64,000 nt of DNA, from the sequence record LC494302.1, one strand, 5' to 3'. Both the position numbers and the translations under genes were made by a program. The first letter of the stretch is position 1. Every line of letters begins with the position of its first letter. Positions 1-64,000 of the stretch are shown here, piece by piece. The notes beneath the pieces are model-generated. The model had not been told where the DNA came from and made no database searches. It saw only the letters and a list, made by a program, of their open reading frames with translations.

Positions 1-405
1 ACGCATACACGAAGATATCACAACACTATCAATATCATCTGCACTGACACCGAAATCAGTAAAGTTCTGTGTTATATCAACCCAAACGCCGTTAGTGTTT
101 GAAGATAGTATTGGAATAACAGTACGTCTACCAGTGTACCAAATAGTACCATCTTTCTTTATAGCAATTGTTCCTTGTACCCCACCCCAATATCGTGTAA
201 CATTTGAGTTGACAAGAGTCCATTCAGTTGAAGAGTCCAATGAACCATTACCACTTTGTCCATATGCTGAAGAACCAAACCAATATAGATTGCCATTTGT
301 GTGTAAATAAAATTTGGCATCAGCAGAACATTGTAACCTGTTTTTAGGTAGAATCAGTTCAGGTGCGATATTCCCGTACTTAACCATTCTTGCAAAAGGT
401 AACAT
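1..405 (-). CDS. RCC1/BLIP-II-like repeat protein (partial, runs off window start)
   Basis: Hand-translated from ATG 405: MLPFARMVKYGNIAPELILPKNRLQC...LYWFGSSAYGQSGNGS...; open to base 1; SD AGGAGG; same N-terminal tag as neighbours. Confidence 0.8.
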   Translation of the reverse strand, partial: MLPFARMVKYGNIAPELILPKNRLQCSADAKFYLHTNGNLYWFGSSAYGQSGNGSLDSSTEWTLVNSNVTRYWGGVQGTIAIKKDGTIWYTGRRTVIPILSSNTNGVWVDITQNFTDFGVSADDIDSVVISSCMR

Positions 406-420
406 ATTCCCTCCTTTATT

Positions 421-439
421 TGTTATACTATATTTAATA
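421..439 (-). promoter_or_regulatory. putative late promoter (TAAATA core)
   Basis: Minus strand TATTAAATATAGTATAAC; same block at 2811-2830 and 4061-4077; resembles T4 late TATAAATA. Confidence 0.5.
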
Positions 440-440
440 C

Positions 441-469
441 AAATAAGAAAGCCAGTACTCTGTACTGGC
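441..469 (-). terminator. intrinsic terminator
   Basis: Stem GCCAGTAC/GTACTGGC (451-469) then TTTCTTATTT on minus strand, after stop of 476..1585. Confidence 0.7.
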
Positions 470-475
470 ATTATG

Positions 476-1585
476 TTATTTTGGTAAATCAATTTTAGTA
501 AAGACTGCAACATCCTCGATTGCACCTGGAATGGCGTAATACGATCCAGTACTATACACATCTCCATTTTTGGTTAATATCGATGTCAAACCATCACTAA
601 AAAGAACATCCCTAATCTCACTAACTTCAACGGGTAATTGTAAATTGGTAGCACTATATATAGCACCAGTTTGAGAATTGTTTAATCCCAAACCACGGTT
701 CGCCCCAACACCCTTCTGATATGTACTAGTAATTACCATTTGTGTAGCAGTATTTAAGGCAGGTGAATTCGTCATAAACAACGGAGAACTATTAGGCAAA
801 GTACTTAAAGGAACTGCACGGAATGTAGTCGTACCTGAACTAAGAAAGTTTGGAGTTTGACCACATACGAAATATGATGTACCATTATAGTAATTTAATG
901 CATTACCACCAATGGCTGCATCGATTACACCAGAACTACGCAATCCCCAAGTGTTAATTTGTGTTTGGTTCCCCGTACCATGCTGCCCACTACTATTCCA
1001 TCCAGAACTATATAGCTTATTATCTAATGTAAGATACATACTATCATTCGCATTGGTCATTACTTTACGAACGTTCGTAGCACATTGAGTTAATGTGTAA
1101 ATTGATGATGAACCAATACCCAAAGAACCACGATATCCATTATCTCCTGCACCATAGAGTACTGAATTAGTGCTAAGTACAAATATTAAACCATTTGTAC
1201 ATACAATATTAGCAATTTCACTTACTGGTATAGCATTGGTAAACCAATTAGTTCTTTCAACTAATACAGTACTGTAAGAAGTAGTTGTAGAAGATGAGAA
1301 CCAGTACGTTTGACCTGATGTCCATATCGTATTATCATTTTTAATAATAACAAGTGTACGATCACCCACGAAAAAATTAGAAACATCTGCACTTACTAAT
1401 GTCCACGAAGACACCGTGTTGGTATTACCATTTCCAGATTCACCACCTTGATTTCTACCTATGTAATATAAATCATGTGAATCAGTCAATAAGAATTGGC
1501 CTTGGGTAGAAGCACCAACTTTAATTATTTTTTTAGGACCAGGGACAATATTTCCATACATAATCATTCTTCCAAAAGGTAACAT
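476..1585 (-). CDS. RCC1/BLIP-II-like beta-propeller protein
   Basis: Repeats such as LYYIGRNQGGESGNG, LYGAGDNGYRGSLGIG, LYSSGWNSSGQHGTG; start moved to MLPFGRM at 1585 behind AGGAGG. Confidence 0.8.
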   Translation of the reverse strand: MLPFGRMIMYGNIVPGPKKIIKVGASTQGQFLLTDSHDLYYIGRNQGGESGNGNTNTVSSWTLVSADVSNFFVGDRTLVIIKNDNTIWTSGQTYWFSSSTTTSYSTVLVERTNWFTNAIPVSEIANIVCTNGLIFVLSTNSVLYGAGDNGYRGSLGIGSSSIYTLTQCATNVRKVMTNANDSMYLTLDNKLYSSGWNSSGQHGTGNQTQINTWGLRSSGVIDAAIGGNALNYYNGTSYFVCGQTPNFLSSGTTTFRAVPLSTLPNSSPLFMTNSPALNTATQMVITSTYQKGVGANRGLGLNNSQTGAIYSATNLQLPVEVSEIRDVLFSDGLTSILTKNGDVYSTGSYYAIPGAIEDVAVFTKIDLPK

Positions 1586-1593
1586 ATTCCCTC

Positions 1594-2796
1594 CTATTGT
1601 TGCCATAACTGCGATGGCATTAATGTTAGTGTAGTAATACTATAAGTGCCATCTGGCAATCTACCACCATTTCCATTCCAGCCACCACATGCATATAATT
1701 TATAATCTTTAGTAATTATTATGGTTCTGCTCCAATCTTTAGATGCCATAAGAACATTGTCATAACCACTACTTATTGCACTAAGATTAAAAATATTCCA
1801 AGTTCTAACTAATGTATTAGTTCCATTACCTTCTTGACCATATGAGTTAGCACCACTACTTCTAACATATGGTGCGTATTGTGCCATAGGTGCACCAATT
1901 GATGCATTTCCCATATTACTTGGACAAATAAAAGTACTGTACTTACTTACATCAACCGTGACCGATGTGTTCCTAATTGGTGTTAGCTGATTTACCGATG
2001 TAGTCGTACCATTACCAGCTTGTCCAGAACTGTTAGCCCCGCTATAATATACAGACCCACCAGTAGTAAACCACCAAGTAACATCGTATGTAGTACTAAT
2101 ATGTTCTACATTACTAATCACGAATTTGTTCAAATATACAACAGAACTACCACCACATCCACTTTCACCAAAGTTATCCTTACCACAAAACCATGCATCT
2201 TTATTTGATTTGATATAGTGCGTTCCTTGTAATGAACATGCCATATGTGTAACTTCACCCATATTAGTCATAACTGTGAGTGTAGGGATGGAATTTTTAT
2301 TCCCAGAGCCACATTCACCATTAGTATTTCTTCCACACGCAATTACTCTACCATCGGTTAATAATATTCTAGTACTTTCACCTATATATACACTCTTGAT
2401 CATATTAGCCATAACACCTATTTTATTAAATGCAACAGTAACATCAGTCCATGTTGTCAAATAACCATTAACAGGTGTTGCATCTCCATAATCAGAAAAT
2501 GCACCAACCGACCCAGTGTAGTATATTTTATTATCCAAATCAATCATCAATGAACCTTGAACACCAAGCCAAAAGGCTGCACAGTTCCTTGCAAGTACTG
2601 TAAATGACGAAACTGCTGCTGAATTCCCAAGACCAAATTGATAAAAGTTATTACTACCATAACCATATAAAGTATTAGTTGGGTTATGGAGATACATACA
2701 GTTTGTATAATGTTGTTGTAAAACATCTGAGAACTCTACAGGTTCTGGACCTGGTGCAATATTTGCGTACTTAACCATTCTTCCAAAAGGTAACAT
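1594..2796 (-). CDS. RCC1/BLIP-II-like beta-propeller protein
   Basis: Repeats LYGYGSNNFYQFGLG, IACGRNTNGECGSG, YYSGANSSGQAGNG, SSGANSYGQEGNG. Confidence 0.85.
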   Translation of the reverse strand: MLPFGRMVKYANIAPGPEPVEFSDVLQQHYTNCMYLHNPTNTLYGYGSNNFYQFGLGNSAAVSSFTVLARNCAAFWLGVQGSLMIDLDNKIYYTGSVGAFSDYGDATPVNGYLTTWTDVTVAFNKIGVMANMIKSVYIGESTRILLTDGRVIACGRNTNGECGSGNKNSIPTLTVMTNMGEVTHMACSLQGTHYIKSNKDAWFCGKDNFGESGCGGSSVVYLNKFVISNVEHISTTYDVTWWFTTGGSVYYSGANSSGQAGNGTTTSVNQLTPIRNTSVTVDVSKYSTFICPSNMGNASIGAPMAQYAPYVRSSGANSYGQEGNGTNTLVRTWNIFNLSAISSGYDNVLMASKDWSRTIIITKDYKLYACGGWNGNGGRLPDGTYSITTLTLMPSQLWQQ

Positions 2797-2810
2797 ATTT
2801 CCCTCCTTTA

Positions 2811-2830
2811 TTCATTATACTATATTTAAT
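2811..2830 (-). promoter_or_regulatory. putative late promoter (TAAATA core)
   Basis: Minus strand TTAAATATAGTATAATGAA upstream of 1594..2796. Confidence 0.5.
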
Positions 2831-2832
2831 AC

Positions 2833-2863
2833 AAAAAGAAATGCCAGTATCAAGTACTGGCAT
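2833..2863 (-). terminator. intrinsic terminator
   Basis: Stem ATGCCAGTA/TACTGGCAT (2841-2863) then TTCTTTTT on minus strand. Confidence 0.7.
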
Positions 2864-2867
2864 AATA

Positions 2868-4046
2868 TTATCGGTTAAATTTAAAATCTGTTATGTGTGT
2901 CCATGTATGATTTAATGGGGTACTCATTGGTGTAAAGCCAGCAGGGTCTGACAAAGCTGTACCACGTGCGTACATAAATTGATTGCCAGTACAATCCATT
3001 ATAGCATAAGAACGTGTTGCTGTGCCACATTTGAACCCAACTGCACTACTTGGGGTCGGTAATACTTCAAATGTAGGTGCATTTGAACTACCACCCCCAT
3101 CTTTTGTTCCAGCTATGTACAGAACTCCATTAGTATCAATGATTAAGTTAGTCCAATATGCTTGTTCTCGACCAGCATAAAAATATGTTAAATCACCGGG
3201 TACAAATGGTAACGTTCCTTTATATATTGTGGTATTAACATTCACTGGTGCACCAGCTACACCCCATGAACTCATATAGTTTCTCCCACTTGCGTAGAAT
3301 GTAGTTCCTTTACCGTAAAGTATTAATGTTGCTTGACTTGTTCGCATTGCATTATATTCAAACTCAGGATCATCAGTAGCGTCCTTAAAAATCTGTGTCC
3401 ATGTTGTTATATTGCCAGTAGTTGTAACACCCATTTGATAATAATAATTATCACCAGTAGCATAGAATTCTTTAGGGCCAGTTTGTACAATTGCATTCCC
3501 ATTAGTTAACCAAAAATCTAATGTATTAGTCTTGATCTTGGTTGGTGTGTAATTCGCCACGGTATTTCCTTTTCCGAAATAACCATTAGCGTTATTTCCA
3601 TGACCCCATAAATCACCATTAGTTGTGCGTAGGAATAATGTACCAGTATTGAATCCAACTTTTTCTATAGTACTTATGTCAATACCAACAGTCGTGTACT
3701 TCGTTGTAAAATCTTGAAAAGTACTCCAATAATTAGATGAACCATTAAACATGGTTTGTCTACCAGTGTACTTCACTTTATTATCGTTAGTGATAAGTAA
3801 TGTCCCCCACACTGACGCGAACATTAACTTAACATTTTCCATAACAAAGTATGGCTTACCGTATGCTGACGCGGTAGTGTTTAAACCTAATAGTTGTCCA
3901 TCATTACTACAACCCCATACTTCGCCGTTATCCAAAAGCATCAACATAGTAGGTTTGCCGGATGATACATCCAAAAAGAAATCTTTTGGTGTTGGTACAC
4001 CAGGTACAATATTTCCGTACTTAACCATTCTTGTAAAAGGTAACAT
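2868..4046 (-). CDS. RCC1/BLIP-II-like beta-propeller protein
   Basis: Repeats VWGCSNDGQLLG, LWGHGNNANGYFGKG, FYATGDNYYYQMG; start moved to MLPFTRM at 4046. Confidence 0.8.
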   Translation of the reverse strand: MLPFTRMVKYGNIVPGVPTPKDFFLDVSSGKPTMLMLLDNGEVWGCSNDGQLLGLNTTASAYGKPYFVMENVKLMFASVWGTLLITNDNKVKYTGRQTMFNGSSNYWSTFQDFTTKYTTVGIDISTIEKVGFNTGTLFLRTTNGDLWGHGNNANGYFGKGNTVANYTPTKIKTNTLDFWLTNGNAIVQTGPKEFYATGDNYYYQMGVTTTGNITTWTQIFKDATDDPEFEYNAMRTSQATLILYGKGTTFYASGRNYMSSWGVAGAPVNVNTTIYKGTLPFVPGDLTYFYAGREQAYWTNLIIDTNGVLYIAGTKDGGGSSNAPTFEVLPTPSSAVGFKCGTATRSYAIMDCTGNQFMYARGTALSDPAGFTPMSTPLNHTWTHITDFKFNR

Positions 4047-4060
4047 AAATCCCTCCTTAT

Positions 4061-4077
4061 TCATTATATCATATTTA
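4061..4077 (-). promoter_or_regulatory. putative late promoter (TAAATA core)
   Basis: Minus strand TAAATATGATATAATGA upstream of 2868..4046. Confidence 0.45.
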
Positions 4078-4094
4078 CCCCATAAAGAAAACCC

Positions 4095-4123
4095 TTGACA
4101 TCCTTTCAGTACTGGTGTACTAT
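4095..4123 (+). promoter_or_regulatory. sigma70-type promoter for family A array
   Basis: TTGACA-N17-TACTAT, AGTACT in spacer. Confidence 0.7.
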
Positions 4124-4148
4124 AGAAGGAATATAAGGAGAACTACAC

Positions 4149-4376
4149 ATGACAAATACTCTTAAGTACTACCTCAATACTCTAAATGAACTAGAGTACG
4201 GGGAATTTCTCGCGGATAGTTCGTGGCTAATTGAGCTAAAAAATTATAATAGTCCAGGATGCACCCTTATGATGAACAATGCAATTGATACCCTCATTGT
4301 GAGTATTTTACACAGCAACATCTGCGGGGATAGCAATAAACAATTATCAAAAATCTTAGTACTGCTATCTATATGA
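4149..4376 (+). CDS. small hypothetical protein (family A, divergent)
   Basis: 75 aa; SD AAGGAG; YYLNTL...MNNAI...LVLLSI pattern. Confidence 0.7.
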   Translation: MTNTLKYYLNTLNELEYGEFLADSSWLIELKNYNSPGCTLMMNNAIDTLIVSILHSNICGDSNKQLSKILVLLSI

Positions 4377-4576
4377 ATATCGAACAGTACTACATCGATG
4401 CACTACCAACAAAAGGTCTACGTGAAAGCCTACTGCATACACAAACTAATTTCAAACACCTCAAACGTAGCCCTAAACTCCTGAACTCGTACAGGAATAA
4501 TAACATAAGAAATGCTTTACAAGGGGTAGAATGTATGCAATACTATTACATCCTTACCCTATTAATTGAGTACTAA
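4373..4576 (+). CDS. small hypothetical protein (family A)
   Basis: MNIEQYYIDALP...YYYILTLLIEY; ATGA overlap. Confidence 0.75.
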   Translation: MNIEQYYIDALPTKGLRESLLHTQTNFKHLKRSPKLLNSYRNNNIRNALQGVECMQYYYILTLLIEY

Positions 4577-4577
4577 T

Positions 4578-4787
4578 ATGAATACTGAACATAAAGAATT
4601 CTACACCAAATACCTTAGCAACGAAGAACAATTGTTTCTAAGGAGTGTATCACCTGTAAGTACCAATACTCAATTCGGTAGAGATTGCTTTAATAATTGT
4701 ATACGTAGTACTCTAGAAGCAATCGAATGCAATAACAAAAATATTATGTACTCAGGTTTAATAGGACTAATATATTTCTATGAATAA
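4578..4787 (+). CDS. small hypothetical protein (family A)
   Basis: MNTEHKEFYTKYL...FNNCIRS. Confidence 0.8.
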   Translation: MNTEHKEFYTKYLSNEEQLFLRSVSPVSTNTQFGRDCFNNCIRSTLEAIECNNKNIMYSGLIGLIYFYE

Positions 4788-4974
4788 TCATAAAGATTTC
4801 TATTGTAGTAAACTACCCAAACAAGAACAGCTATCATTCTCTTTAGCACCACCTATGAGAAAGGATAATCTGTATTATAATTACGATTTCAGGATGGTGA
4901 CACGTTATGCAATAGAACATCAGTTCCCTGAAACTAAGTACCGCTCTATCCTGAACCTCATCTTTAAGTTCTAA
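4780..4974 (+). CDS. small hypothetical protein (family A)
   Basis: MNNHKDFYCSKLP...YRSILNLIFKF. Confidence 0.8.
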   Translation: MNNHKDFYCSKLPKQEQLSFSLAPPMRKDNLYYNYDFRMVTRYAIEHQFPETKYRSILNLIFKF

Positions 4975-5026
4975 AAGGTACACCAGGGACCGAGTACTTT
5001 AATATAGTAAGGCTAATTACATTATA

Positions 5027-5212
5027 ATGAATCATATAAGCTACTACTACCAACAACTATCCGACAGAGACAAGTACAGTCACAACTCCCATGTGTGGTA
5101 CTACAAACGCGGCAGTATAAGAGACAAACAACATTACTTCTGTATTTCTATTAAAGAAGCACTGACAACTAAGTACACGTACCGAGCAGTACTTAAACTT
5201 ATTGAAATGTAA
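5027..5212 (+). CDS. small hypothetical protein (family A2)
   Basis: ...KYTYRAVLKLIEM. Confidence 0.8.
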   Translation: MNHISYYYQQLSDRDKYSHNSHVWYYKRGSIRDKQHYFCISIKEALTTKYTYRAVLKLIEM

Positions 5213-5222
5213 AGAGAATACT

Positions 5223-5405
5223 ATGAACATTGAATTGTACTTAAGTAAATTACAGCCTGGCGATAGATTCATCTACAATAAGTTCGAATTCAACTACAAG
5301 AACGGGAGCAACAAATATCGTCGAGGATACCTATATACAAGCACAAGAGATGCACAAAACGAAAAGTACACATACAGAGAAGTACTTAAACTAATCTCTA
5401 TTTGA
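5223..5405 (+). CDS. small hypothetical protein (family A2)
   Basis: MNIELYLSKL...KYTYREVLKLISI. Confidence 0.8.
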   Translation: MNIELYLSKLQPGDRFIYNKFEFNYKNGSNKYRRGYLYTSTRDAQNEKYTYREVLKLISI

Positions 5406-5413
5406 GGTAATAT

Positions 5414-5599
5414 ATGAATACATTTGAGTACTATACCAATAAACTATCTATGCCTGAAAGATCTCATCTCTATGTGTGGAGAAATGCGTATAAAAGCGGC
5501 AATAAACTTATACAAAGAAATTCCCTTACAGTGTGTACAAATTTAATTAAAGCAGAGTACCGCACATATATTGAAGTACTCAAACTGATAGCAATATAA
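5414..5599 (+). CDS. small hypothetical protein (family A2)
   Basis: MNTFEYYTNKL...YIEVLKLIAI. Confidence 0.8.
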   Translation: MNTFEYYTNKLSMPERSHLYVWRNAYKSGNKLIQRNSLTVCTNLIKAEYRTYIEVLKLIAI

Positions 5600-5607
5600 G
5601 GTACTCT

Positions 5608-5787
5608 ATGCAAGAATTCTATATCTATAACCTCCAGCACAAAGATAGATACAACTATAATAAATTCCAAAGGTACTACACAGTCGGGAACAAAAGAGAT
5701 AAAAAACGTTATCTACTCTCGTGTACAGTAGAAGCACAAAACGAAAAGTACACGTACAGAGAAGTACTTAAACTAATCTCAATCTAA
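5608..5787 (+). CDS. small hypothetical protein (family A2)
   Basis: Not in ORF track; hand-translated 59 aa MQEFYIYNL...KYTYREVLKLISI. Confidence 0.8.
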   Translation: MQEFYIYNLQHKDRYNYNKFQRYYTVGNKRDKKRYLLSCTVEAQNEKYTYREVLKLISI

Positions 5788-5794
5788 GGTAGAC

Positions 5795-5983
5795 ATGAAC
5801 ACTTTTGAGTACTACTTCAATAAACTAAACCACATAGAACAAAGTATGCACAACTCATTTATTCAGCACCATCAATCATCTGCACATGGAATTAAAAATA
5901 TATCGATTGAGATTATCACTACCCGTGTACAGTCATCTGAACGTTATATGTATATTGATGTACTGAAACTCATCTCTATGTAA
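5795..5983 (+). CDS. small hypothetical protein (family A2)
   Basis: MNTFEYYFNKL...YIDVLKLISM. Confidence 0.8.
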   Translation: MNTFEYYFNKLNHIEQSMHNSFIQHHQSSAHGIKNISIEIITTRVQSSERYMYIDVLKLISM

Positions 5984-5991
5984 GGAATAAT

Positions 5992-6171
5992 ATGCAAGAA
6001 TACTATATAGAACACATAAGCATTAAAGACCGTTTCATGTACGACACCTTCGTGAAGTACTACAACCTGGCAACTAACAGTACTAAAAATATTAATCTCA
6101 ATAGCTGCATTCATCACGCACTAACAAAAGATAATCCCTTCAGGGAAATCCTCGCACTAGCATCTGTATAA
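5992..6171 (+). CDS. small hypothetical protein (family A2)
   Basis: Hand-translated 59 aa MQEYYIEHI...FREILALASV; SD AAGGA. Confidence 0.75.
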   Translation: MQEYYIEHISIKDRFMYDTFVKYYNLATNSTKNINLNSCIHHALTKDNPFREILALASV

Positions 6172-6181
6172 AGGAAACCAA

Positions 6182-6841
6182 ATGAAACTTAATGCACACA
6201 GCAAACAATACCTTAAGCACTTTAAGTACCTCAACAGTATTCAAGCAGAATCTATTACATCTGCATATACGTATCACCCAAATGTACTAAAGAAACGAAA
6301 TAAAAAGAAAAAATCCAGAAATGTTCTCGTATCTAAGAACCTCAAATCGTACTTGAAGAAAAATAATATAGCTCTTGCTTTTATTAATATCTATAATACT
6401 GATTTAAAAGTATTGAGTACTAATACCAGCACAAAAGCACTAAAGAATGCATCTATCTATATACACATGGATAATATCCCGTGCACTATAATTCTATCTT
6501 TCGGGAATGTATACTTCTTCGGGAATTGTAATAGCACCCATGATATCAGTACTGCACAATTCCAAATCGGCGATATGTACTGCATGGGTTCAGAAAAAAT
6601 ACACGATAACATGCACTTCTTCCAAAAGCAACGTACTAACGAAACTGATACAGTACTGCAATTCCTCAAAGAATTACAAGGCAAAGAATTATCAGAAGAA
6701 GATCTATTCATGTACAGTACTGTAATCGATAATCCAGAACTCTATAAAAACGCGTACAATCTAACAAAACATGTACAGGAACTTATCAGTACTGATAAGA
6801 AATTTCATCACCTCATTACGTATATTTCAAACTATGTATAA
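6182..6841 (+). CDS. hypothetical protein with family C-like motif
   Basis: 219 aa; LSEEDLFMYSTVID near C-terminus; SD AAGGA. Confidence 0.8.
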   Translation: MKLNAHSKQYLKHFKYLNSIQAESITSAYTYHPNVLKKRNKKKKSRNVLVSKNLKSYLKKNNIALAFINIYNTDLKVLSTNTSTKALKNASIYIHMDNIPCTIILSFGNVYFFGNCNSTHDISTAQFQIGDMYCMGSEKIHDNMHFFQKQRTNETDTVLQFLKELQGKELSEEDLFMYSTVIDNPELYKNAYNLTKHVQELISTDKKFHHLITYISNYV

Positions 6842-7016
6842 AGAATACTACAAAGATAAAATCCCAATGCATCTACAACACCATATACCAAACGTTGCAT
6901 TGGGTATCAAAGATCACGCAAAGATAATGTTCCAACAATGTACTAAGTACACGCTCATATACGATGATAATCCATATATGCTGTACTACGTAGTAATGCT
7001 AACATTCAGGTACTAA
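6834..7016 (+). CDS. small hypothetical protein (family A1)
   Basis: MYKEYYKDKIP...FQQCTK...LTFRY. Confidence 0.8.
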   Translation: MYKEYYKDKIPMHLQHHIPNVALGIKDHAKIMFQQCTKYTLIYDDNPYMLYYVVMLTFRY

Positions 7017-7017
7017 T

Positions 7018-7197
7018 ATGAATACTTATAAAGAATTCTACCTCTCGTACCTTAATTCCGATATAGTAACATCCAATACATTCAGTACTAAAATTATCTA
7101 TAATGAATTAATGAAAGAATGTATTAAAGGTGCTATTAACCCTAAAGATACGTATGACTTGTACTATGCAGTACTAACCCTTGTTTTCACGAAATAA
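7018..7197 (+). CDS. small hypothetical protein (family A1)
   Basis: Hand-translated 59 aa MNTYKEFYLSYL...MKECIK...YYAVLTLVFTK. Confidence 0.8.
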   Translation: MNTYKEFYLSYLNSDIVTSNTFSTKIIYNELMKECIKGAINPKDTYDLYYAVLTLVFTK

Positions 7198-7205
7198 CAC
7201 ATAAT

Positions 7206-7397: not shown

Positions 7398-7398
7398 T

Positions 7399-7581: not shown

Positions 7582-7582
7582 C

Positions 7583-7966: not shown

Positions 7967-7967
7967 T

Positions 7968-56819: not shown

Positions 56820-57400
56820 ACCATATCAGAACTAAAATTTTGAGACTCATGCATGACATTGCAGAACTTTCAGAGATTCATGACATTACAGAAATTGTTG
56901 AATTTGATGATTATCGACTGAAAATTGAAAACAAATCCAAACATCGTTTTGGATCAGTTCAGTTGGATGTATATAAAACTTATGAATTTTCTAAAAAAAT
57001 TAAAAGTTCATGGGATACGATTACTATGTACATTCGCACATCCAGAAATCGTGAACGTATTGGTTCTATTTCTTCTAATATGGTATTTGCGAATGCATTA
57101 CATGAAAAAATGAATAAAATTGTAGAATCTGATTTCAGTGAAGATGATGGTTTTATTGGGTTGGATGTTCCACCAGAATTAGACCAAAGTGAAGATATTC
57201 GAGATGCATTCATTTTCCAGAAATCATTGTTGGACAATTACAAAGAATTCGAGTACTTAATGCTTTGTTACGATACTGCAAAAGTTCTTGATTGTGGTGA
57301 ACTAGTTATGTACAATGATTTTATCAATTACAAGACTGATGTTCTGAATACACTACTTCAAAATATAGAATCGGTTAAGGAAAAATATGAACGCTTATAG
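56816..57400 (+). CDS. family C protein
   Basis: RDAFIFQKSLLD. Confidence 0.85.
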   Translation: MNHIRTKILRLMHDIAELSEIHDITEIVEFDDYRLKIENKSKHRFGSVQLDVYKTYEFSKKIKSSWDTITMYIRTSRNRERIGSISSNMVFANALHEKMNKIVESDFSEDDGFIGLDVPPELDQSEDIRDAFIFQKSLLDNYKEFEYLMLCYDTAKVLDCGELVMYNDFINYKTDVLNTLLQNIESVKEKYERL

Positions 57401-57965
57401 TTATATGACAGAACGCCATCAGTTATTATATGATATCAGTACAAAAATGTTATCAATTGTTAGTAGTGCAAAAGAAATTGAAAAACAATACCTCATCCGT
57501 GATGTAGCAATTTCATCTAAATGTTGGTCCAATGAATATTACGATCACGGTATTCTTACTATTTCTGGGGCTAGAAATATTTGTATTGTAAAAAATAAAA
57601 ATAAAAGTAATGAAGAGTGTGAGATTATAACCGATATACAAATTAAGGATGATGGAAGTTTTTCACACCACCCATTCCATATTAGTACTATTGGTGTTTT
57701 ATATAATATTAAAGTACTATTCGGTGATGAAGAGTATGTGTTAAAATCTATCAATCCAGAATCAAGTACAGTTGAAGAAGAACTGTTCCAGATGAGCACT
57801 GTTATACCTGAAGAGGTTCTTAGTACTGTTATTTTTTGTAGTTTAATTTATCATGAATACAAAAAGTACCAGTTCGATTTCCACATGTTAGGAACATACA
57901 TCTTCAATAATTTGAATGTAGATCGTTTAACAGCATTAAATGCAGCAATGGATAAGGTGCTATAA
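57387..57965 (+). CDS. family C protein
   Basis: VEEELFQMSTVIP. Confidence 0.85.
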   Translation: MNAYSYMTERHQLLYDISTKMLSIVSSAKEIEKQYLIRDVAISSKCWSNEYYDHGILTISGARNICIVKNKNKSNEECEIITDIQIKDDGSFSHHPFHISTIGVLYNIKVLFGDEEYVLKSINPESSTVEEELFQMSTVIPEEVLSTVIFCSLIYHEYKKYQFDFHMLGTYIFNNLNVDRLTALNAAMDKVL

Positions 57966-58393
57966 TGACAAGAGATGATTGTTTGTACATATGGGATATA
58001 ATTGAAACTACACTTTCAAATCCAGAAAATTATAAAACAAAAAAAAGACAACGACACAAAATATGGATAGATTTGTTCGTTGAGGGCATACACGCAGTGA
58101 CTATTTGGGATTCACCGAGGGCATCATCATCTACTCTGTTGGACAATGAATGCATTGATTGCATTAATTCCACTTTTCATCTCTACGGTACTACAATTTT
58201 TGGTACATTTCTGGATATTGAAAGTAAAGATGATATTGATTCACTTGCGTTACAATACCAAGTACTATATAATACTAAATTAATTTACGATTTAGTACTA
58301 GCTTCTTATGTGTATAAATTAATGATGAAATATAATCATATTTCTGTTTCAGTTTATACTAAGGATATTCTTTCATTAAGAGACAAAACATGA
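57965..58393 (+). CDS. family C-like protein (degenerate motif)
   Basis: IDSLALQYQVLYN. Confidence 0.8.
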   Translation: MTRDDCLYIWDIIETTLSNPENYKTKKRQRHKIWIDLFVEGIHAVTIWDSPRASSSTLLDNECIDCINSTFHLYGTTIFGTFLDIESKDDIDSLALQYQVLYNTKLIYDLVLASYVYKLMMKYNHISVSVYTKDILSLRDKT

Positions 58394-58899
58394 GTTTATT
58401 AAATGCACGCGAATTGGTTGAGATGTATGAGATTTTGTCTTCATATAAAAATTCTCCAAAAGATGTAATTCTAAACAAAAAGTTCCATGTCAGTGTTGAA
58501 CATATAACAAATATAGATATGATTTCTTTGGTGGAAAGTAATAAGTCAGGTCTGGAGCGTGATATCATGCGTTTGATTTATATTCCTAAACCATCATATA
58601 CTAATGATAGTACTATTAGCAATGAGACATTCATGTATAGTCCTGGTACGGATTCTACTATAGTATCGCTGTCCAATAAATCAATGGATACTTTCCAATT
58701 CATCTATACCAGTACTGATAACATTGAAGAAATTGAATTTCAAAACAATACATTAAGTCCATGTAGTAGTGTTATAACCTTTATGTCATATCTATGGTCA
58801 ACTAAAACAAGTGCTGTTGTATATAGTTCAAATTATACACAAGATAGTATTGTTGAATCATATAAAGTTCTAAAGGAATACTATGAAAATAACAAATGA
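58390..58899 (+). CDS. family C protein
   Basis: IEEIEFQNNTLS. Confidence 0.8.
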   Translation: MSLLNARELVEMYEILSSYKNSPKDVILNKKFHVSVEHITNIDMISLVESNKSGLERDIMRLIYIPKPSYTNDSTISNETFMYSPGTDSTIVSLSNKSMDTFQFIYTSTDNIEEIEFQNNTLSPCSSVITFMSYLWSTKTSAVVYSSNYTQDSIVESYKVLKEYYENNK

Positions 58900-59464
58900 T
58901 TTTATTAAAAGTGTAGTACACCCTATGCTTAGTATTATGAAAAAAATACAGAATCTACCGGAAGATAACGATTACAAGTTTAATCGTTTTGATTCAGATG
59001 TGTTTTGTATTGAAATTGAAATTAATAACAATCGTAATTTACATTTAAAATTCAAAGAATCTTCGAGTCCGTACTACAACTTTGATATGAATTTTAAAAT
59101 AGATACTGACATTGAAGAAAACGTAATATCAAATCATACTAGCAAAAATGGTTTTATGCATAGAACTACTATGTACAATAATAAAAATAGTATTATATCT
59201 AAATGGAATCAACAATTCACTAAAATTTGTGAAATTGAATATAATGATTTTGGTAAAGAACATTACTTTCAGTTAAGTACAATTCATGAACTTCCACCAT
59301 ATGATTATGTTAAAACATGGTTTGATATTCATAATATAATTGATGATGCAATCAAACTTCCATTTGGTGTGTCAATATCATATACTGCTCCTAAAACATT
59401 TGTTTTTACTGAAGATATGATTATGAAAAAGATATGGGCAATCATCCCACTTATGATGGATTAA
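58883..59464 (+). CDS. family C protein
   Basis: GKEHYFQLSTIHE. Confidence 0.85.
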   Translation: MKITNDFIKSVVHPMLSIMKKIQNLPEDNDYKFNRFDSDVFCIEIEINNNRNLHLKFKESSSPYYNFDMNFKIDTDIEENVISNHTSKNGFMHRTTMYNNKNSIISKWNQQFTKICEIEYNDFGKEHYFQLSTIHELPPYDYVKTWFDIHNIIDDAIKLPFGVSISYTAPKTFVFTEDMIMKKIWAIIPLMMD

Positions 59465-59470
59465 ATTTGT

Positions 59471-59507
59471 ACCAGGGGTTGACTCTGGTTTTTTTGTATG
59501 ATACATT
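59471..59507 (+). terminator. terminator overlapping a possible promoter
   Basis: ACCAGGG-GTTGA-CTCTGGT then T run; contains TTGACT-N17-TACATT. Confidence 0.6.
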
Positions 59508-59525
59508 GTTCTCAAGGAGAATTTT

Positions 59526-60077
59526 ATGAACTACAATCATGATCTTTTTACATTATGTGCATCCAAATGTGTTGAAGGATGGGCAGATAAAATCAATATC
59601 ATAATTCATCGATATCTCGTCTTTAGTTCCCGTGCACGAAGTGAGGGGGCTATGGATTTCAAATATACACTATCTATTGATGGTGTAACTATCCATGCAG
59701 ACGAAGAACGTCTGAACATTAATTTGTATGATTCCTGTGTATTTGCTATTCACCAAAAGATGGGGAAAGGATGGGGTTGTAATAACATTAACTCCAAAGC
59801 TATCTTTTGGGTTGGTCACCATCAGACAGTACTTGATCCTTCAATCAAATCTAATCTTTTATCCGATAATATGGTTTATGATTTATTGTACTCCGAAGAA
59901 CAACATTTTCAGTTAAGTACATTGCATGTTCTGGCACAGTACGAGGATTGTTACAAAACATTAGAACTATGCCATTCCCTTGAACTTAAAGATAAATTAA
60001 TACAAGTTTACCCTTCATTCTTTCATGAAGAAGTCCAAAGTACACTAGATCATATTTTATATGGATACGATAAATGA
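59526..60077 (+). CDS. family C protein
   Basis: SEEQHFQLSTLHV; SD AAGGAG. Confidence 0.85.
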   Translation: MNYNHDLFTLCASKCVEGWADKINIIIHRYLVFSSRARSEGAMDFKYTLSIDGVTIHADEERLNINLYDSCVFAIHQKMGKGWGCNNINSKAIFWVGHHQTVLDPSIKSNLLSDNMVYDLLYSEEQHFQLSTLHVLAQYEDCYKTLELCHSLELKDKLIQVYPSFFHEEVQSTLDHILYGYDK

Positions 60078-60676
60078 GAAAAAGTTATCAAGAAGCTATT
60101 GACTTAATTCGTGAAGTTATCAAGGTGGCTCCTGCTGCTATTGAGTTCAAGAAGTCCATATACAAGAAGTATGGGTCAATGTCGAGTATGTGCTTTCAAA
60201 AGAAACGTAGAGCATTCACTACCCAGTACTGGAATGATTCTATCATCCTGAGCAATGAGACTCAGCGTATTTTAACACTAGAATCTGAACCTAATGAGTA
60301 CGGGGAAGGAAACATTTGTGTACCTGATTATGATGAAATTAACTTCAACTGCGGTGATTTTGAAACAACATTATTACTTCATGAGGGTTATCCAGAAGGT
60401 GATGTATTAGCTGAATACAATCCAAAAACTAAAATTCTCAAAAGAGGAATTCAGTTCACTATTAATAACAAAGATGATGTTGAAGCAGCACTGATGCAAC
60501 TGAGTACAAGTGAACCTATCACTATTAGTGTAGAAGAGTTATGGGGAATTATTTCAGTACTCAATGAGTGCTATAAAGTAAAATCATTGCGTAATCACAC
60601 CCTTATATTGCATACTAATATGGCAAATATAAAATGTAAGCACATTCAAGAAATGGTGGTTCCAGATGGACTTTAA
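60074..60676 (+). CDS. family C protein
   Basis: VEAALMQLSTSE. Confidence 0.8.
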   Translation: MRKSYQEAIDLIREVIKVAPAAIEFKKSIYKKYGSMSSMCFQKKRRAFTTQYWNDSIILSNETQRILTLESEPNEYGEGNICVPDYDEINFNCGDFETTLLLHEGYPEGDVLAEYNPKTKILKRGIQFTINNKDDVEAALMQLSTSEPITISVEELWGIISVLNECYKVKSLRNHTLILHTNMANIKCKHIQEMVVPDGL

Positions 60677-61250
60677 AGAAATTGAAAGTAAATTAAAGTA
60701 CTTCAAAGATATCAAACTTCTTTGGGAAAAGTATAAAATTGATTACAATTTCAGTGATGATGAGACAATAAAATACATTGAGATTAATATCAAAATCAAG
60801 TTCAAGAATAATAATTATGGTGAAGTAAGCTTAAATCATGCTGGTATATCACTCAAGGACTATGATGGTTCAACACTCGCATATTTCGACTTCACACCAG
60901 AACCAGGTGAAACACTACTTAGTGAGATAAATTCCTATGACATGGAAGTGTTCGGCGGGAATCCGTTACTGTTCCGACTTTCTGAAGAGTGGAGTGAAGA
61001 ATACTACACTTACAAAGATGGTGTAGTACTTGACATTCATGGAGAAGTTGTGAATGACTTGGAAGAACGTTTGTTCCAAGAATTGTGTGTTTCAAATACT
61101 TCATATGCATACAATCATATCCTTGACATGTTTGATTTATATAGTAAAATAGATGCTGAAATGAATGCACATGGTATTCATTACCTTACAATTAACGACT
61201 ATGCTCAACTCGAAACCGCTGTGAAAGCATTGACTAAAGTACTGAAATAG
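60666..61250 (+). CDS. family C protein
   Basis: LEERLFQELCVS. Confidence 0.8.
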   Translation: MDFKEIESKLKYFKDIKLLWEKYKIDYNFSDDETIKYIEINIKIKFKNNNYGEVSLNHAGISLKDYDGSTLAYFDFTPEPGETLLSEINSYDMEVFGGNPLLFRLSEEWSEEYYTYKDGVVLDIHGEVVNDLEERLFQELCVSNTSYAYNHILDMFDLYSKIDAEMNAHGIHYLTINDYAQLETAVKALTKVLK

Positions 61251-61259
61251 GAATGAAAT

Positions 61260-61673
61260 ATGAAACTGTATCATGCGAGTACTGTAAAAATTGATAACTT
61301 TTATATCCCGTATGGTGGCCTTCATATGGGAGGTAAACACAGTGCTTTAGAAGCTGCCTTACGCAAGCTGAGAAGCCCACTAAACGTTGTTGACGCATGT
61401 ACAGTATACTTGCATACCTTAGAAGTTGATGTTGATAACGTGCTTCTGTGTGAAGATTTAGGCAGTGATGATGAGTGGCGTTCACTTATTGAGAATTGCA
61501 CGGCTCAAGGTTATGATGCTGTTCAGTACAAAAATGATTACGAGCCAGACAATGTTCCTAGCTTTATGATTTGGGATACATCTAAAATTCGTATTATTGA
61601 AGTTGATGCGATGCATATGGATGAAGCTGAAATGATCATCGAAGATTTCCTTGATGAATATGAAGGTGTATAA
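61260..61673 (+). CDS. ADP-ribosyltransferase-like fold protein
   Basis: KLYHAS...GLHMG...SALEAA...GYDAVQYKNDYE...SFMIWDTSKI; layout of small phage/polyvalent ART-like domains (by eye). Confidence 0.55.
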   Translation: MKLYHASTVKIDNFYIPYGGLHMGGKHSALEAALRKLRSPLNVVDACTVYLHTLEVDVDNVLLCEDLGSDDEWRSLIENCTAQGYDAVQYKNDYEPDNVPSFMIWDTSKIRIIEVDAMHMDEAEMIIEDFLDEYEGV

Positions 61674-62191
61674 TGATTGAACCTATGACAGTACTAGCAC
61701 GTACTAAATTATTATTGAAGATTGCTGAAATATTCACTGTTCTTATGTACAATAATCAAGACATAACTGACTTAGGTATTAAGCAACCGTGGCAAATTAC
61801 AAAGTTCACGGCGTTCCACCGATTGTCATATAATGGTGAAACTGTTCTTGATTTTAATCCAAAAGCCACGTTCGTGAATTACGCTGCATTATATGGATGT
61901 AATGGTGGATTAACAAATGACTTCACTGAAATAAAAGTACAATCAGAATCATTAGAATTTAATGACTTAATATATCCAGAATTTAAGTTAACAGAAGAAA
62001 CACTATTTCAGTACTCACTAATTATAAAAGATGTATATGATCTTGAGTACTACAAAGAGTTAGTAGATATTTTTAAGAATACTCGACTTTCAAAAGATAT
62101 TGTGATATTCTGGTATGTTGAGTATGTTACAGAGGAATTGCTAGAAGAATTTCTTCTAAATATGACAGCTATAAAGGAGAAGTTATGTTAG
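61673..62191 (+). CDS. family C protein
   Basis: TEETLFQYSLII. Confidence 0.85.
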   Translation: MIEPMTVLARTKLLLKIAEIFTVLMYNNQDITDLGIKQPWQITKFTAFHRLSYNGETVLDFNPKATFVNYAALYGCNGGLTNDFTEIKVQSESLEFNDLIYPEFKLTEETLFQYSLIIKDVYDLEYYKELVDIFKNTRLSKDIVIFWYVEYVTEELLEEFLLNMTAIKEKLC

Positions 62192-62658
62192 ATATTTTAG
62201 GAAACATCGACACTGCAAATTATTTTATTCAAGATGCATTGTTTAATACAGTACAACAAGGTTTAGAAGTTCACCACAATGTTTATCAGGGTGATGGATA
62301 TTTTGTTGATATTATCGAGACACGTAAAAATACATTTAATGTTAACATTACGACGCTTGGAAGACAGAACATTGCACGAATTTTAGTAAGTAAAGATGAA
62401 ATAGTACTGAGATACAGTGCTAAGTTTATGTTGACTTATAAGAAAAAAACTGATATGTTCAGTACTAATTTATTTGATGAGCCATTTGACCTTGAAGATA
62501 TTGAAGCTACTTTCTTTACTCAAAGTACTATGGTAAAATACACTGATGTTCAATTTTCTGCTGATGTAATGTCAGAAACATTACAAATGATCAAGGTATT
62601 ATTTTATGCATTTGAGCAATTTAGAGAAGAAAGAAACAAGGTTAACAACCACAGATGA
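62185..62658 (+). CDS. family C protein
   Basis: IEATFFTQSTMV. Confidence 0.8.
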   Translation: MLDILGNIDTANYFIQDALFNTVQQGLEVHHNVYQGDGYFVDIIETRKNTFNVNITTLGRQNIARILVSKDEIVLRYSAKFMLTYKKKTDMFSTNLFDEPFDLEDIEATFFTQSTMVKYTDVQFSADVMSETLQMIKVLFYAFEQFREERNKVNNHR

Positions 62659-63019
62659 ACTAATAGAGGCGATCACTAAGGAGTCAAAATACCATAAAGG
62701 GATTCGTCTATACTTTATAGATACTGGTTCGATGGAAGGTACATACATTTATGGTTCACAATCGTTGTCTTATGATGCAATGCCAAATAAACATGTTAAA
62801 ATCTTTTTAGGTTCAAGTAATAAAACTTTCTTGACAATTAATGATAAAAACGTTATTATGAATTCGTTGGGTCATGATAAGGTGGAAATTGATCTAAACA
62901 CGCTGGAGGATATTGATTTTTTTCAATACGAGTGTTTAGGTGTTGACTTACATGGCATTAGTAGCGATATGATAAAATCATTAATCAAATATTTCGAAGG
63001 TGTTCATAAATGTATCTAA
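62606..63019 (+). CDS. family C protein (start uncertain)
   Basis: LEDIDFFQYECL. Confidence 0.75.
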   Translation: MHLSNLEKKETRLTTTDELIEAITKESKYHKGIRLYFIDTGSMEGTYIYGSQSLSYDAMPNKHVKIFLGSSNKTFLTINDKNVIMNSLGHDKVEIDLNTLEDIDFFQYECLGVDLHGISSDMIKSLIKYFEGVHKCI

Positions 63020-63507
63020 CTAAATCAATGAAAAATTCATTTGATAAAATTAAGAGTTGTCTTGATGGAGAAAATATTACAAGTGTTACACAAACTGCTG
63101 ACCAAATTCAAAGCAGTTCAAGTGATTGCACTGTTATTTTTGGTTTACATAGTCTGCGTTTATCAATAGTAAATAATATTGACAACACTGCTATTGTAAT
63201 CACACCATGCAATATTCAAAATGAGAATGGTGTATATCTTCATCACATGGGAACAGTATTTCACATTTTCAATTCAAACGAAAACATTGTTAAGGAATAC
63301 AATACTCTTAATATTGATTCAGGTGAATTATTTCAAATGAGTACTTTGTACTCATGTAATTTTACAGATACTTCATGTATTTTGCCATTTTTCTTGGAAA
63401 TTATTAAGAAAATGGAAAATTTAAAACGTGAATACAATAAAGAAATGGTTCCTGAAGCTATATTAAATATTACTAATGCTATAGAGAAGTATAATGCAGT
63501 GACTTAA
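63010..63507 (+). CDS. family C protein
   Basis: DSGELFQMSTLYS. Confidence 0.85.
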   Translation: MYLTKSMKNSFDKIKSCLDGENITSVTQTADQIQSSSSDCTVIFGLHSLRLSIVNNIDNTAIVITPCNIQNENGVYLHHMGTVFHIFNSNENIVKEYNTLNIDSGELFQMSTLYSCNFTDTSCILPFFLEIIKKMENLKREYNKEMVPEAILNITNAIEKYNAVT

Positions 63508-63549
63508 TAAAAACGCACATGGAGTGCATTAGAAGATCAAGGATAGATC

Positions 63550-64000
63550 ATGGAGATTAAAACTGTTGAAAATGGGAAAATTGATGACATTTTAGAGTTG
63601 GACGCATTCAAAGTTCATGATATAATGTTTAATGTGAAGGACATTATTCAATGTCTATTTTTGTGTAGCAAGACAATGCATGATTTTTTTCACAACCCAA
63701 ATACTAACGTTTTTATACTAACAATCAGTACTGAAAACTCGTTTATCATGGGTATGCCTATGAGTACAAATGAACAATATATTGATTGTGTTATTCGTAA
63801 TAACGATAGTATTACGCCACAATCTGAAGTACGTAAAAAGAAAAACACCTACACAATCAAAGATGATAAAATTATGATGTGCTGTAGTAAAGGGTTTATA
63901 TTAGATAATTTTATCGTAAAAGACAGTTATCACGACTTTAAAGTATCTGAAAATCAATCCAATGTAGTTCTTTATGCGAGTGACATAGAAAGTCTAACAG
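63550..64000 (+). CDS. hypothetical protein (partial, runs off window end)
   Basis: Hand-translated MEIKTVENGKIDDILELD...; no stop before 64000; SD AAGGA. Confidence 0.75.
   Translation, partial: MEIKTVENGKIDDILELDAFKVHDIMFNVKDIIQCLFLCSKTMHDFFHNPNTNVFILTISTENSFIMGMPMSTNEQYIDCVIRNNDSITPQSEVRKKKNTYTIKDDKIMMCCSKGFILDNFIVKDSYHDFKVSENQSNVVLYASDIESLT

Follow-up and report, generated by a model that had tools for sequence, protein, structure and literature searches.

HIP1 (GCGATCGC) of cyanobacteria is a short palindrome that occurs many-fold above Markov expectation, is found within genes in all reading frames and is conserved above background; it has been linked to orphan methyltransferases, and its function is reported to be still unknown (PMC5861425, PMC4390886). 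In bacterial chromosomes, Chi and KOPS (the latter orienting FtsK) are polar, skewed words that exceed expectation, occur in genes of every class and are recognised by a translocating helicase-nuclease or pump; their orientation reverses at a defined point, an origin or terminus. Operators of dimeric repressors in phages and bacteria have a palindromic core with symmetric, graded flanks, and lie either across the -35 edge or in the spacer adjoining the -10 element. The terminal repeats of phages SPO1 and T5 are host-takeover modules, where a long direct repeat carries many tiny early genes that all have a terminator and a strong promoter of host type.

The window analysed here is a stretch of 64,000 nucleotides (positions 124001–188000 of record LC494302.1) from Escherichia phage SP27 (Asteriusvirus, 347 kb), in which the palindrome AGTACT is over-represented (coordinates are those of the window, and features lie on the plus strand unless stated otherwise). 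AGTACT is comparable to HIP1 in its many-fold excess, its codon-controlled excess in genes and its above-background conservation, but it is six rather than eight bases long and belongs to a virulent phage rather than to a cellular genome; it differs further in peaking in a terminal repeat, in occupying fixed promoter positions, in having strand-specific one-base variants in defined blocks and in residing in a genome purged of most other palindromes. Unlike Chi and KOPS words, AGTACT is a palindrome and so has no polarity. Asymmetry is confined to its variants AGTACA and TGTACT, and these switch orientation locally, with a polarity extending over only ~12–50 kb and no cognate translocase or nuclease known. 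Like a repressor operator, AGTACT is a palindrome overlapping core promoter elements, with paired sites two helical turns apart; unlike operators, which are confined to regulatory regions, it is present in hundreds of in-gene copies over 347 kb (179 of the 271 copies in the window) and is accompanied by blocks of one-sided variants. The comparison of the SP27 repeat with the SPO1 and T5 modules is one of setting, and a palindromic signature of this kind is not known to have been described for those modules.

Abundance and distribution of AGTACT

The window contains 271 copies of AGTACT. Base composition predicts 21.5, and Markov models predict 18.8 (dinucleotide), 110 (order 3) and 227 (order 4). 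The whole SP27 genome contains 912 copies, against 118 (mononucleotide), 100 (dinucleotide), 183 (order 2), 350 (order 3) and 738 (order 4). That the order-4 expectation lies near the observed number is due solely to its 5-mer inputs, AGTAC and GTACT, whose own frequencies are raised by the word; this model is thus circular. The over-representation claimed in the initial annotation, which had correctly put the expectation at about one copy per 3 kb, is borne out by the counts in both window (271 vs ~21) and genome (912 vs 118), and its clusters of six copies in 11761–12180 and four in 45801–45920 are present. Its statement that copies occur throughout all blocks does not hold, as AGTACT is absent from 29751–34400 and 36901–44500, two blocks totalling 12.3 kb (probability 8e-15 at genome-wide density).

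The 271 sites (1–64000) are found across all gene classes; 179 of them (about two thirds) fall within annotated genes, 89 between genes and 3 at gene edges. All three reading frames are used (72/39/68), and the intergenic density (9.1 per kb) is above that in genes. As a separate observation, the E. coli Chi octamer is also ~12-fold enriched in SP27.

Phage genomes are known to avoid short palindromes, and the RaK2-like clade does so to an extreme degree. The SP27 genome is without 23 of the 64 palindromic hexamers, and AGTACT is therefore retained contrary to the general trend of the genome, which also has zero copies of GCGC; the runner-up among enriched palindromic hexamers in the window reaches only 3.3x. 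That one palindrome persists at 8- to 20-fold excess amid such avoidance, although protein sequences are altered as a result, marks a DNA-protein interaction of evident importance in a widespread group of enterobacterial jumbo phages. The question can be tested directly, given that the densest block coincides with the terminal repeat, that the promoter positions are fixed and that the one-sided blocks are mirrored.

Selection on the word

Codon usage, dipeptide frequencies or lower-order words might produce the excess artefactually, as AGT, ACT, GTA and TAC are common codons in SP27 and the order-4 model accounts for 738 of the 912 copies, albeit by the circular route described above. The codon-shuffled control proposed in the initial annotation leaves the excess in place, however: the 178 in-gene sites compare with 52.9 ± 5.7 after synonymous shuffling within each gene (z = 22) and with 22.6 ± 5.0 after shuffling of codon order (z = 31). 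Ser-Thr and Val-Leu dipeptide counts are raised by AGTACT, which encodes 71 of the 134 Ser-Thr pairs where ~18 would be expected by arithmetic from codon counts. With the shuffles, the Ser-Thr usage and an intergenic density exceeding that in genes all against it, a compositional or coding artefact is rejected, its probability being negligible.

Between SP27 and fEgEco12, 171 of 191 AGTACT sites (89.5%) are conserved, compared with 70.2% of all 6-mers (z ~5.9; 2.7–3.2 per block), and the changes comprise 20 losses and 12 gains, a small sample; across genera, 26–47% of sites are conserved against a background of 15–18%. The excess is common to six other RaK2-like lineages (5–7x) and absent in relatives with 43–45% TerL identity. 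Positive selection on the DNA word, as initially proposed, is upheld, since the excess survives codon and dipeptide controls, extends to all frames and intergenic DNA, distorts dipeptides, recurs across genera and comes with conserved sites. AGTACT is the signature word of RaK2-like jumbo phages, a positively selected signal that would be read on duplex DNA. No report of this phenomenon was found in the literature searched. The word provides a simple sequence signature for recognising the clade, and can be used to locate the terminal repeat in assemblies deposited as circular.

Biased mutation or repair that converts near-matches, like the very-short-patch repair of E. coli, could also produce such an excess as a functionless by-product; drives of this type are known to inflate methylase target words, and one has reportedly been discussed for HIP1. 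However, no one-mismatch neighbour of AGTACT is drained (AATACT/AGTATT at 1.07x, most neighbours at 1.0–2.0x), the word occupies fixed promoter positions, and block-specific one-sided variants are unexpected from a genome-wide process, so that a drive of this type is very improbable.

Terminal repeat and early promoters

The block densest in AGTACT coincides with a predicted ~21-kb direct terminal repeat (8822–29750; 20.9 kb), both boundaries of which were mapped by homology to phage fEgEco12; this coincidence is a new finding. The repeat contains 135 AGTACT (6.45 per kb), of which 57 lie in genes and 78 between them. It also carries ~55 small genes of early type, every one with a separate sigma-70 promoter. 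The density in the terminal repeat of fEgEco12 is 4–10 per kb, and the terminal repeat of fENko-Kae01, a phage of another genus, contains 122 copies against 6.4 expected. The block to the left of the SP27 repeat (4101–8821) has 32 AGTACT, with 10 TGTACT vs 5 AGTACA, and its GC skew is negative despite plus-strand annotated genes.

Promoters are represented here by the 41 exact intergenic TATAAT boxes within 4.1–29.7 kb of the window. AGTACT starts at -27 from TATAAT in 18 of the 41 (AAAAGTACTTGCA type), where it touches the 5' edge of the -35 element, and at -7 in 12; where both sites are present they are 20 bp apart (two helical turns), with site centres at ~-36.5 and ~-16.5 when the TATAAT hexamer is counted as -12 to -7. 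This agrees with the geometry described in the initial annotation, in which the word overlaps the -35 element or ends 1 nt before the -10 element, and the copies listed there one base before TATAAT (9201, 14134, 19564, 22307, 23617 and 26460) were all verified. The promoter at 9161–9213 has a TTGACA-type -35 element, AGTACT at 9201–9206, one base before TATAAT (9208–9213), and a second site at 9161. In the promoter at 10466–10498, AGTACT lies at -27 (10466–10471) and its last T is the first base of a TTGCA -35-like element, with TATAAT at 10493–10498, while the promoter at 14114–14146 contains both sites (14114 and 14134, 20 bp apart) and TATAAT at 14141–14146. These fixed positions, likewise a new finding, recur in fENko-Kae01, whose promoters contain AGTACT at -7 in 9 cases and at -27/-28 in 13. 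Terminator stems formed by the word, which had also been noted, exist as hairpins on the minus strand: that of the RCC1-repeat gene (451–469) contains the stem CCAGTAC/GTACTGG followed by a U-rich tail (-14.4 kcal/mol), and a second one of the same type, with a U-rich tail, lies at 2841–2863.

The flanks of AGTACT are mirror-symmetric and graded rather than strict: of the 912 genomic sites, 393 have C at -1 and 427 have G at +6. Intergenic sites show this preference, as do those in frames 0 and 2. The commonest 12-mer around the word is TTCAGTACTGAA, and the left and right flanks are nearly independent (CAGTACTG is observed 200 times vs 184 expected from the marginals).

SlmA, a nucleoid-occlusion protein of the host, binds a 12-bp palindrome whose central six bases are AGTACT; on either side of this core, G and T are required at positions 1–2 and a purine at position 3 (PMC3020112). 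Phage Sharanji is reported to cause filamentation (PMC13282480), which is consistent with AGTACT sites hijacking SlmA and thereby blocking cell division. The flanks required by SlmA are absent or avoided in the phage, however, as the genome contains no full match to the SlmA site, GTG precedes AGTACT in 1 of 912 sites and is among the rarest triplets there, and position 3 is most often C. Hijacking of SlmA was rejected on this sequence requirement and is hardly credible.

Recognition of AGTACT by a clade-specific DNA-binding protein, for which the word would also be an early-promoter operator, is the reading we prefer, with a probability of roughly 40%. We infer a sequence-specific reader, probably phage-encoded and dimeric, with one half-site contacted per subunit. 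Bound at the two promoter positions, this protein would occlude host RNA polymerase, and AGTACT would therefore be an operator for the shut-off or timing of early host-takeover genes; the ~800 further in-gene copies may offer binding sites throughout the genome, a grid by which the phage DNA would be coated, compacted or marked as self.

Of the mechanisms suggested in the initial annotation, the one in best agreement with the promoter positions is a binding grid or regulatory site. The palindrome with its mirror-symmetric, graded flanks is closer to an operator than to a type II enzyme site, its promoter positions are fixed in both SP27 and fENko-Kae01, and its density peaks in the terminal repeat carrying the early genes in SP27, fEgEco12 and fENko-Kae01. 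Selection on individual sites is measurable, both against fEgEco12 and across genera, and the word is kept where 23 of 64 palindromic hexamers are removed. Beyond the repeat, the promoter-like site of the first operon (29790–29817) lacks AGTACT and the next 4.6 kb are site-free, which fits genes exempt from the control. Against a binding protein, two thirds of the sites lie in genes, where promoter control has no need of them, and a symmetric dimer leaves the opposite orientations of the one-sided variants in the site-free blocks unexplained. The near-independence of the two flanks also argues against it, as does the spacing of AGTACT, in which helical periodicity was looked for and none was seen. 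Pfam and PHROG scans of ~45 proteins out of 590 genes gave no DNA-binding candidate. The fixed positions may in part have been inherited by promoter cassettes that arose through duplication, or may be the sole unconstrained positions in a compact promoter.

AGTACT-free blocks and one-sided variants

The two AGTACT-free blocks contain reverse-complement variants of the word, TGTACT in one and AGTACA in the other, which is a new finding. The first block (29751–34400) starts exactly at the right boundary of the repeat, consists of a tandem array of ~20 overlapping genes of one 70-aa paralog family, and contains 8 TGTACT (1.0 expected) and 1 AGTACA. It is followed by a switch block (34401–36900) with 17 AGTACT, 7 AGTACA and 2 TGTACT, where the AT skew falls and the GC skew rises at ~35.5–36.5 kb. 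The second AGTACT-free block (36901–44500) contains 41 AGTACA on the plus strand (2.7 expected; frames 15/14/11) and neither TGTACT nor GTACT (0 vs 7.1 expected for the latter); the base after AGTAC is A in 41 of 43 cases, and the unit is therefore not a plain 5-mer. Tightly packed genes of 140–200 aa occupy the remainder (44501–64000), with 75 AGTACT, all in genes and none intergenic, and 36 AGTACA vs 9 TGTACT.

The same layout is found in the independently sequenced phAPEC6 and Sharanji and in fEgEco12, where one tested gene of the variant block is only 39% identical in protein, and a weaker form is found in fENko-Kae01. Within a 27-member paralog family, the variant type tracks genomic position rather than the gene. 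In SP27 the flip between variants coincides with a step in both GC and AT skew, and in fENko-Kae01 with one in GC skew; the plus-strand bias extends ~40 kb to the right of the flip.

These blocks lend unexpected support to a directional form of the Chi-like signal that had been listed initially as one possibility. The functional unit may be the polar word AGTAC + A/T, read on one strand by a DNA-tracking machine, with a helicase-primase on the lagging-strand template, or a helicase-nuclease for which the word is a Chi-like stop signal, as candidates; we regard this as possible but rather doubtful. AGTACT would be the economical two-way version, used where the machine may arrive from either side, and the one-sided versions would lie next to a fixed start (origin or entry site) just inside the left terminal repeat. 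A polar word is consistent with the prevalence of TGTACT to the left of 34.4–36.9 kb and of AGTACA to the right, with the opposite orientation excluded, and with the preservation of this layout among relatives, its dependence on genomic position, the skew steps and the extended plus-strand bias. It is also consistent with the independence of the half-site flanks and with the occurrence of AGTACT across all gene classes and frames, as for Chi-type words. However, the sixth base is constrained, there is no genome-scale strand switch, and no iterons or other origin-like repeats were found in the switch block. The terminal-repeat peak and the promoter phasing would require a separate reason, the skew steps might also arise from differing gene families, and the RecD/Dda-like helicase and PD-(D/E)XK nuclease encoded by the phage have no shown link to AGTACT.

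Extended to the whole genome, AGTAC + A/T would be, with the same reserve, an architecture code of RaK2-like phages read by the phage replication or recombination machine. The code would be two-way over most of the genome and densest in the terminal repeat, where entry would come from one side at one end of the virion DNA and from the other side at the other end, and one-way, mirrored around the fixed start, just inside the left repeat. If true, no virus would have been described before with an orientation system of the Chi or KOPS kind.

Possible DNA modification

Dam-family methyltransferases usually act on GATC. A Dam-family (PF05869) adenine methyltransferase and a neighbouring nucleotidyltransferase gene are conserved through the enriched clade, with outgroup homologs of the methyltransferase at 40–46% identity; the initial proposal to look for a methyltransferase or a DNA-binding protein has thus yielded the former, and no candidate for the latter among the ~45 proteins scanned. 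Because this enzyme is conserved in the clade, AGTACT may be the target of a phage DNA methyltransferase and the methylated word a self-mark, in analogy to HIP1 and the orphan methyltransferases; we consider this unlikely, one point against it being the usual GATC preference of the family. As most other restriction-type palindromes are purged, AGTACT must be harmless to the phage, which a protective modification would explain; protection alone, however, makes a site neutral and not favoured, and a reader is therefore still needed. For RaK2, two putative DNA methyltransferases and resistance of the DNA to many restriction enzymes have been reported (PMC3622015), whereas fEgEco12 DNA is cut as predicted by ten enzymes (ScaI not among them) and therefore has no global modification. 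By sequence logic, AGTACA and TGTACT keep the first A of the word on one strand only, and under methylation they would be sites able to carry the mark on a single strand.

Abundance of AGTACT in the SP27 genome

The window is identical to positions 124001–188000, plus strand, of Escherichia phage SP27 (LC494302.1, 347,152 bp, Asteriusvirus PBECO4), a RaK2/121Q-like jumbo myovirus, and nearly all of its approximately 160 genes are annotated as hypothetical. The window contains 271 copies of the palindromic hexamer AGTACT, whereas base composition predicts 21.5 and a dinucleotide model 18.8. The whole SP27 record, which was read piecewise for genome-wide counts, contains 912 copies where 118 are expected, with enrichment in every 5-kb bin, and the octamer CAGTACTG is present in 200 copies genome-wide (3.4 expected). 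Low-order Markov structure is ruled out as an explanation, as only an order-4 model comes near the observed count and that model is circular.

The codon-shuffled control proposed in the initial annotation leaves the excess standing: the 178 in-gene copies in the window compare with 52.9 ± 5.7 after synonymous codon shuffling within genes and with 22.6 ± 5.0 after shuffling of codon order, which rules out a codon or dipeptide artefact. In-gene copies use all three reading frames (72/39/68), and the density in the window is higher between genes (9.1 per kb) than within them (3.3 per kb). The word marks the encoded proteins through a dipeptide excess, with 134 Ser-Thr pairs (74 expected) and 160 Val-Leu pairs (90 expected); Thr-Ser and Leu-Val show no enrichment. 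A drive by very-short-patch-type repair is also ruled out, as no neighbouring word is drained. AGTACT is, with high confidence, a selected signal at the DNA level.

Palindrome avoidance and distribution among related phages

Of the 64 palindromic hexamers, 23 have no copy in the SP27 genome (8.5–31.6 expected for each), and the tetramer GCGC is likewise missing where 292 copies are expected (or 183 under a dinucleotide model). The genome thus avoids palindromes to an extreme degree, with AGTACT as the one large exception. None of the other four-base palindromes counted in SP27 is removed to the degree of GCGC, whose loss suggests a specific pressure, either from a host enzyme or from a phage nuclease sparing its own DNA.

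The AGTACT excess is a trait of the phage lineage. Around the terminase gene it amounts to 6.6-fold in RaK2, 6.5-fold in GAP32, 5.1-fold in Salmonella phage Munch, 5.1-fold in an IMG/VR contig (73% TerL identity), 6.6-fold in Xanthomonas phage XbC2 and 5.4-fold in Yersinia phage fHe-Yen9-04, and all six contain no GCGC, as is also the case for phages fEgEco12 and fENko-Kae01. PA5oct-like contigs, with terminases 43–45% identical, show AGTACT at only 0.5–1.9-fold, and GCGC is normal in the three longest of them, pooled.

Site anatomy, promoters and conservation

The flanks of AGTACT are graded and mirror-symmetric, with C preceding 393 and G following 427 of the 912 sites, T-rich sequence further to the left and A-rich sequence further to the right. 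The C/G preference is seen between genes as well as in frames 0 and 2, and the two flanks are nearly independent of each other (200 sites with both, 184 expected). The spacing of AGTACT has no helical periodicity; the 20-bp promoter spacing alone stands out. Search patterns designed for clustered copies would match SP27 itself only 0–4 times. Promoters were scanned with the standard sigma-70 consensus hexamers, and among the 41 intergenic TATAAT promoters at window 4.1–29.7 kb, 18 carry an AGTACT beginning at position −27 (counted from TATAAT), where it touches the −35 element at its 5′ edge, and 12 carry one beginning at −7, where it occupies the spacer beside the −10; the two sites lie 20 bp apart in promoters having both. 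Klebsiella phage fENko-Kae01, which belongs to another genus, has the identical two promoter positions. CCAGTAC/GTACTGG forms the stem of some terminators. On recount, the AGTACT positions, promoter geometry and terminator hairpins quoted in the initial annotation all proved correct.

Of 191 AGTACT sites that align between SP27 and fEgEco12, 171 are conserved, whereas the rate for six-base words in general is 70.2%; the corresponding values are 93.9% versus 83.6% within the terminal repeat and 71% versus 53% at window 44.5–57.2 kb, a region where the one-sided variant AGTACA is kept in 88% of cases (versus 53%). In cross-genus comparisons (approximately 71–73% nucleotide identity), 26–47% of sites are kept, against 15–18% of all words.

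Terminal repeat

The direct terminal repeat of fEgEco12 is 20,993 bp long, and its termini have been confirmed by PhageTerm and restriction digests (PMC13070987). As aligned with this genome, whose first base corresponds to window 8,822 and whose repeat ends at window 29,750, SP27, deposited as a circular record, is predicted by homology to have a terminal repeat of about 20.9 kb at window 8,822–29,750. Exactly this interval is the AGTACT-densest block (135 sites, 6.45 per kb). In fEgEco12, the density is 4–10 per kb over the first 21 kb and falls to zero directly past the repeat boundary, while the annotated repeat of fENko-Kae01 (1–19,736) contains 122 copies (6.4 expected), with 7–9-fold enrichment in the DNA outside. 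The right boundary falls between CCT and TAGC in both phages, which are of different genera. The repeat carries genes typical of takeover, which include those for a DksA/TraR-type zinc-finger protein (window 20990–21247), a ParE-like toxin domain protein (window 24833–25087) and a weak kinase-like match below the Pfam threshold (window 25415–25999), all three conserved in fENko-Kae01.

The reading ranked first, with a probability of roughly 0.4, is that AGTACT is recognised by a clade-specific DNA-binding protein, for which it would be an operator in early promoters and part of a binding grid in the remaining DNA. This reading best suits a palindromic site whose flanks are symmetric and graded, which recurs at the same promoter positions in different genera and which peaks in the repeat with the early genes. 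The absence of AGTACT from the first operon that follows the repeat fits as well. Pfam and PHROGs scans of approximately 45 of the approximately 590 SP27 proteins gave nothing convincing as the reader protein. Hijacking of SlmA is ruled out, as the flanks that SlmA requires in its published 12-base site are absent around AGTACT.

A 2-kb stretch without annotated genes (window 8549–10553) extends across the left repeat boundary. It has AGTACT in many copies and contains a cassette, present in duplicate at window 10354–10430, with two of the sites 13 bp apart. At window 4101–8821, GC skew takes strongly negative values (−0.13 to −0.23) despite plus-strand small genes, and TGTACT is enriched (10 copies). 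The 207 matches listed by megablast for window 9000–19000 include seven Campylobacter phage records and a few from Acinetobacter and Erwinia. The record of the related phage Sharanji begins inside a gene at window 44,923, its positions 1–26000 matching the sequence from there downward. This start conflicts with the termini confirmed by experiment in fEgEco12, so the repeat position reported for Sharanji may be offset; a model that took the record start as its basis and had Chi-like sites face the two ends of the genome was dropped for the same reason.

One-sided blocks

The most unexpected result of the analysis is the presence of blocks carrying only one-sided variants of the word. The initial annotation placed AGTACT in all blocks of the window, which is incorrect, as window 29,751–34,400 and window 36,901–44,500 contain no copy. 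The first block has eight TGTACT (1.0 expected) and one AGTACA, while the second has 41 AGTACA (2.7 expected), distributed over all three frames with varied flanks, and neither TGTACT nor GTACT (7.1 expected for the latter). All genes of both blocks are on the plus strand, yet the variants are reverse-complementary, which favours a cause at the level of DNA over one at the level of RNA. In the second block, the base after AGTAC is A in 41 of 43 cases; AGTACA is therefore a defined hexamer rather than the remnant of a decayed site. Only half of its positions there are common to SP27 and fEgEco12 at equal density, which indicates site turnover under selection for density.

The one-sided layout is repeated in phAPEC6, Sharanji and fEgEco12, the last of which shares only 39% protein identity in one second-block gene that was tested; fENko-Kae01 has a weaker one-sided pattern after its repeat. 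A sequencing artefact is ruled out by the identical pattern in three independently sequenced relatives. A single paralog family, arranged in tandem, makes up the first block; it encodes proteins of approximately 70 amino acids from genes whose starts and stops overlap. Its 27 members (window 29848–35373, 36918–37372 and 49748–49939) are divided into 20 in the first block, four in the switch block between the two (window 34,401–36,900), two in the second block and one further on. Whether a paralog carries TGTACT, AGTACT or AGTACA is set by its location, and the words lie mostly at non-homologous positions. The variants are thus not relics of gene duplication, as they occupy non-homologous columns and their type tracks position.

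Where the orientation flips, both GC and AT skew change stepwise in SP27, as does GC skew in fENko-Kae01, and the plus-strand bias of the non-palindromic form continues for approximately 40 kb rightward of the flip. A polar strand-tracking signal, with the palindrome as its two-way form, is the sole reading that covers both the mirrored blocks and the skew step; the non-palindromic form has no genome-scale strand pattern in SP27 and the switch block has no origin-like repeats, and this reading, ranked second, is considered rather unlikely. At 280–290 kb of the SP27 record, which includes the long tail fibre gene, non-palindromic AGTAC occurs 23 times on the plus and 4 times on the minus strand, opposite to the genes, which are on the minus strand.

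Possible methylation and comparison with known systems

A Dam-family methyltransferase gene followed by a putative nucleotidyltransferase gene is located at positions 192297–193348 of the SP27 record, and the pair is kept in Asteriusvirus, in Klebsiella and Salmonella relatives and in fENko-Kae01. The nucleotidyltransferase label is taken from the annotation of relatives, the SP27 protein having sub-threshold Pfam matches only. AGTACT as a methylation mark placed by this conserved putative Dam-family enzyme is ranked third and is improbable. The binding-protein, polar-signal and methyl-mark readings are compatible and not mutually exclusive.

The nearest described phenomenon is the HIP1 palindrome of cyanobacteria, of which AGTACT shares three of the four defining features tested. 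However, the host type differs, and AGTACT is tied to a terminal repeat and promoters and has polar variants. Full-text literature searches found no paper linking AGTACT with RaK2-like phages. AGTACT has a fair chance of being more distinct than a HIP1-like variant. The E. coli Chi octamer is present in 14 copies on one strand of SP27 and in 12 on the other (approximately 1 expected on each), and Chi-related six-base words, CTGGTG and CCACCA for example, rank with the most enriched of the genome.
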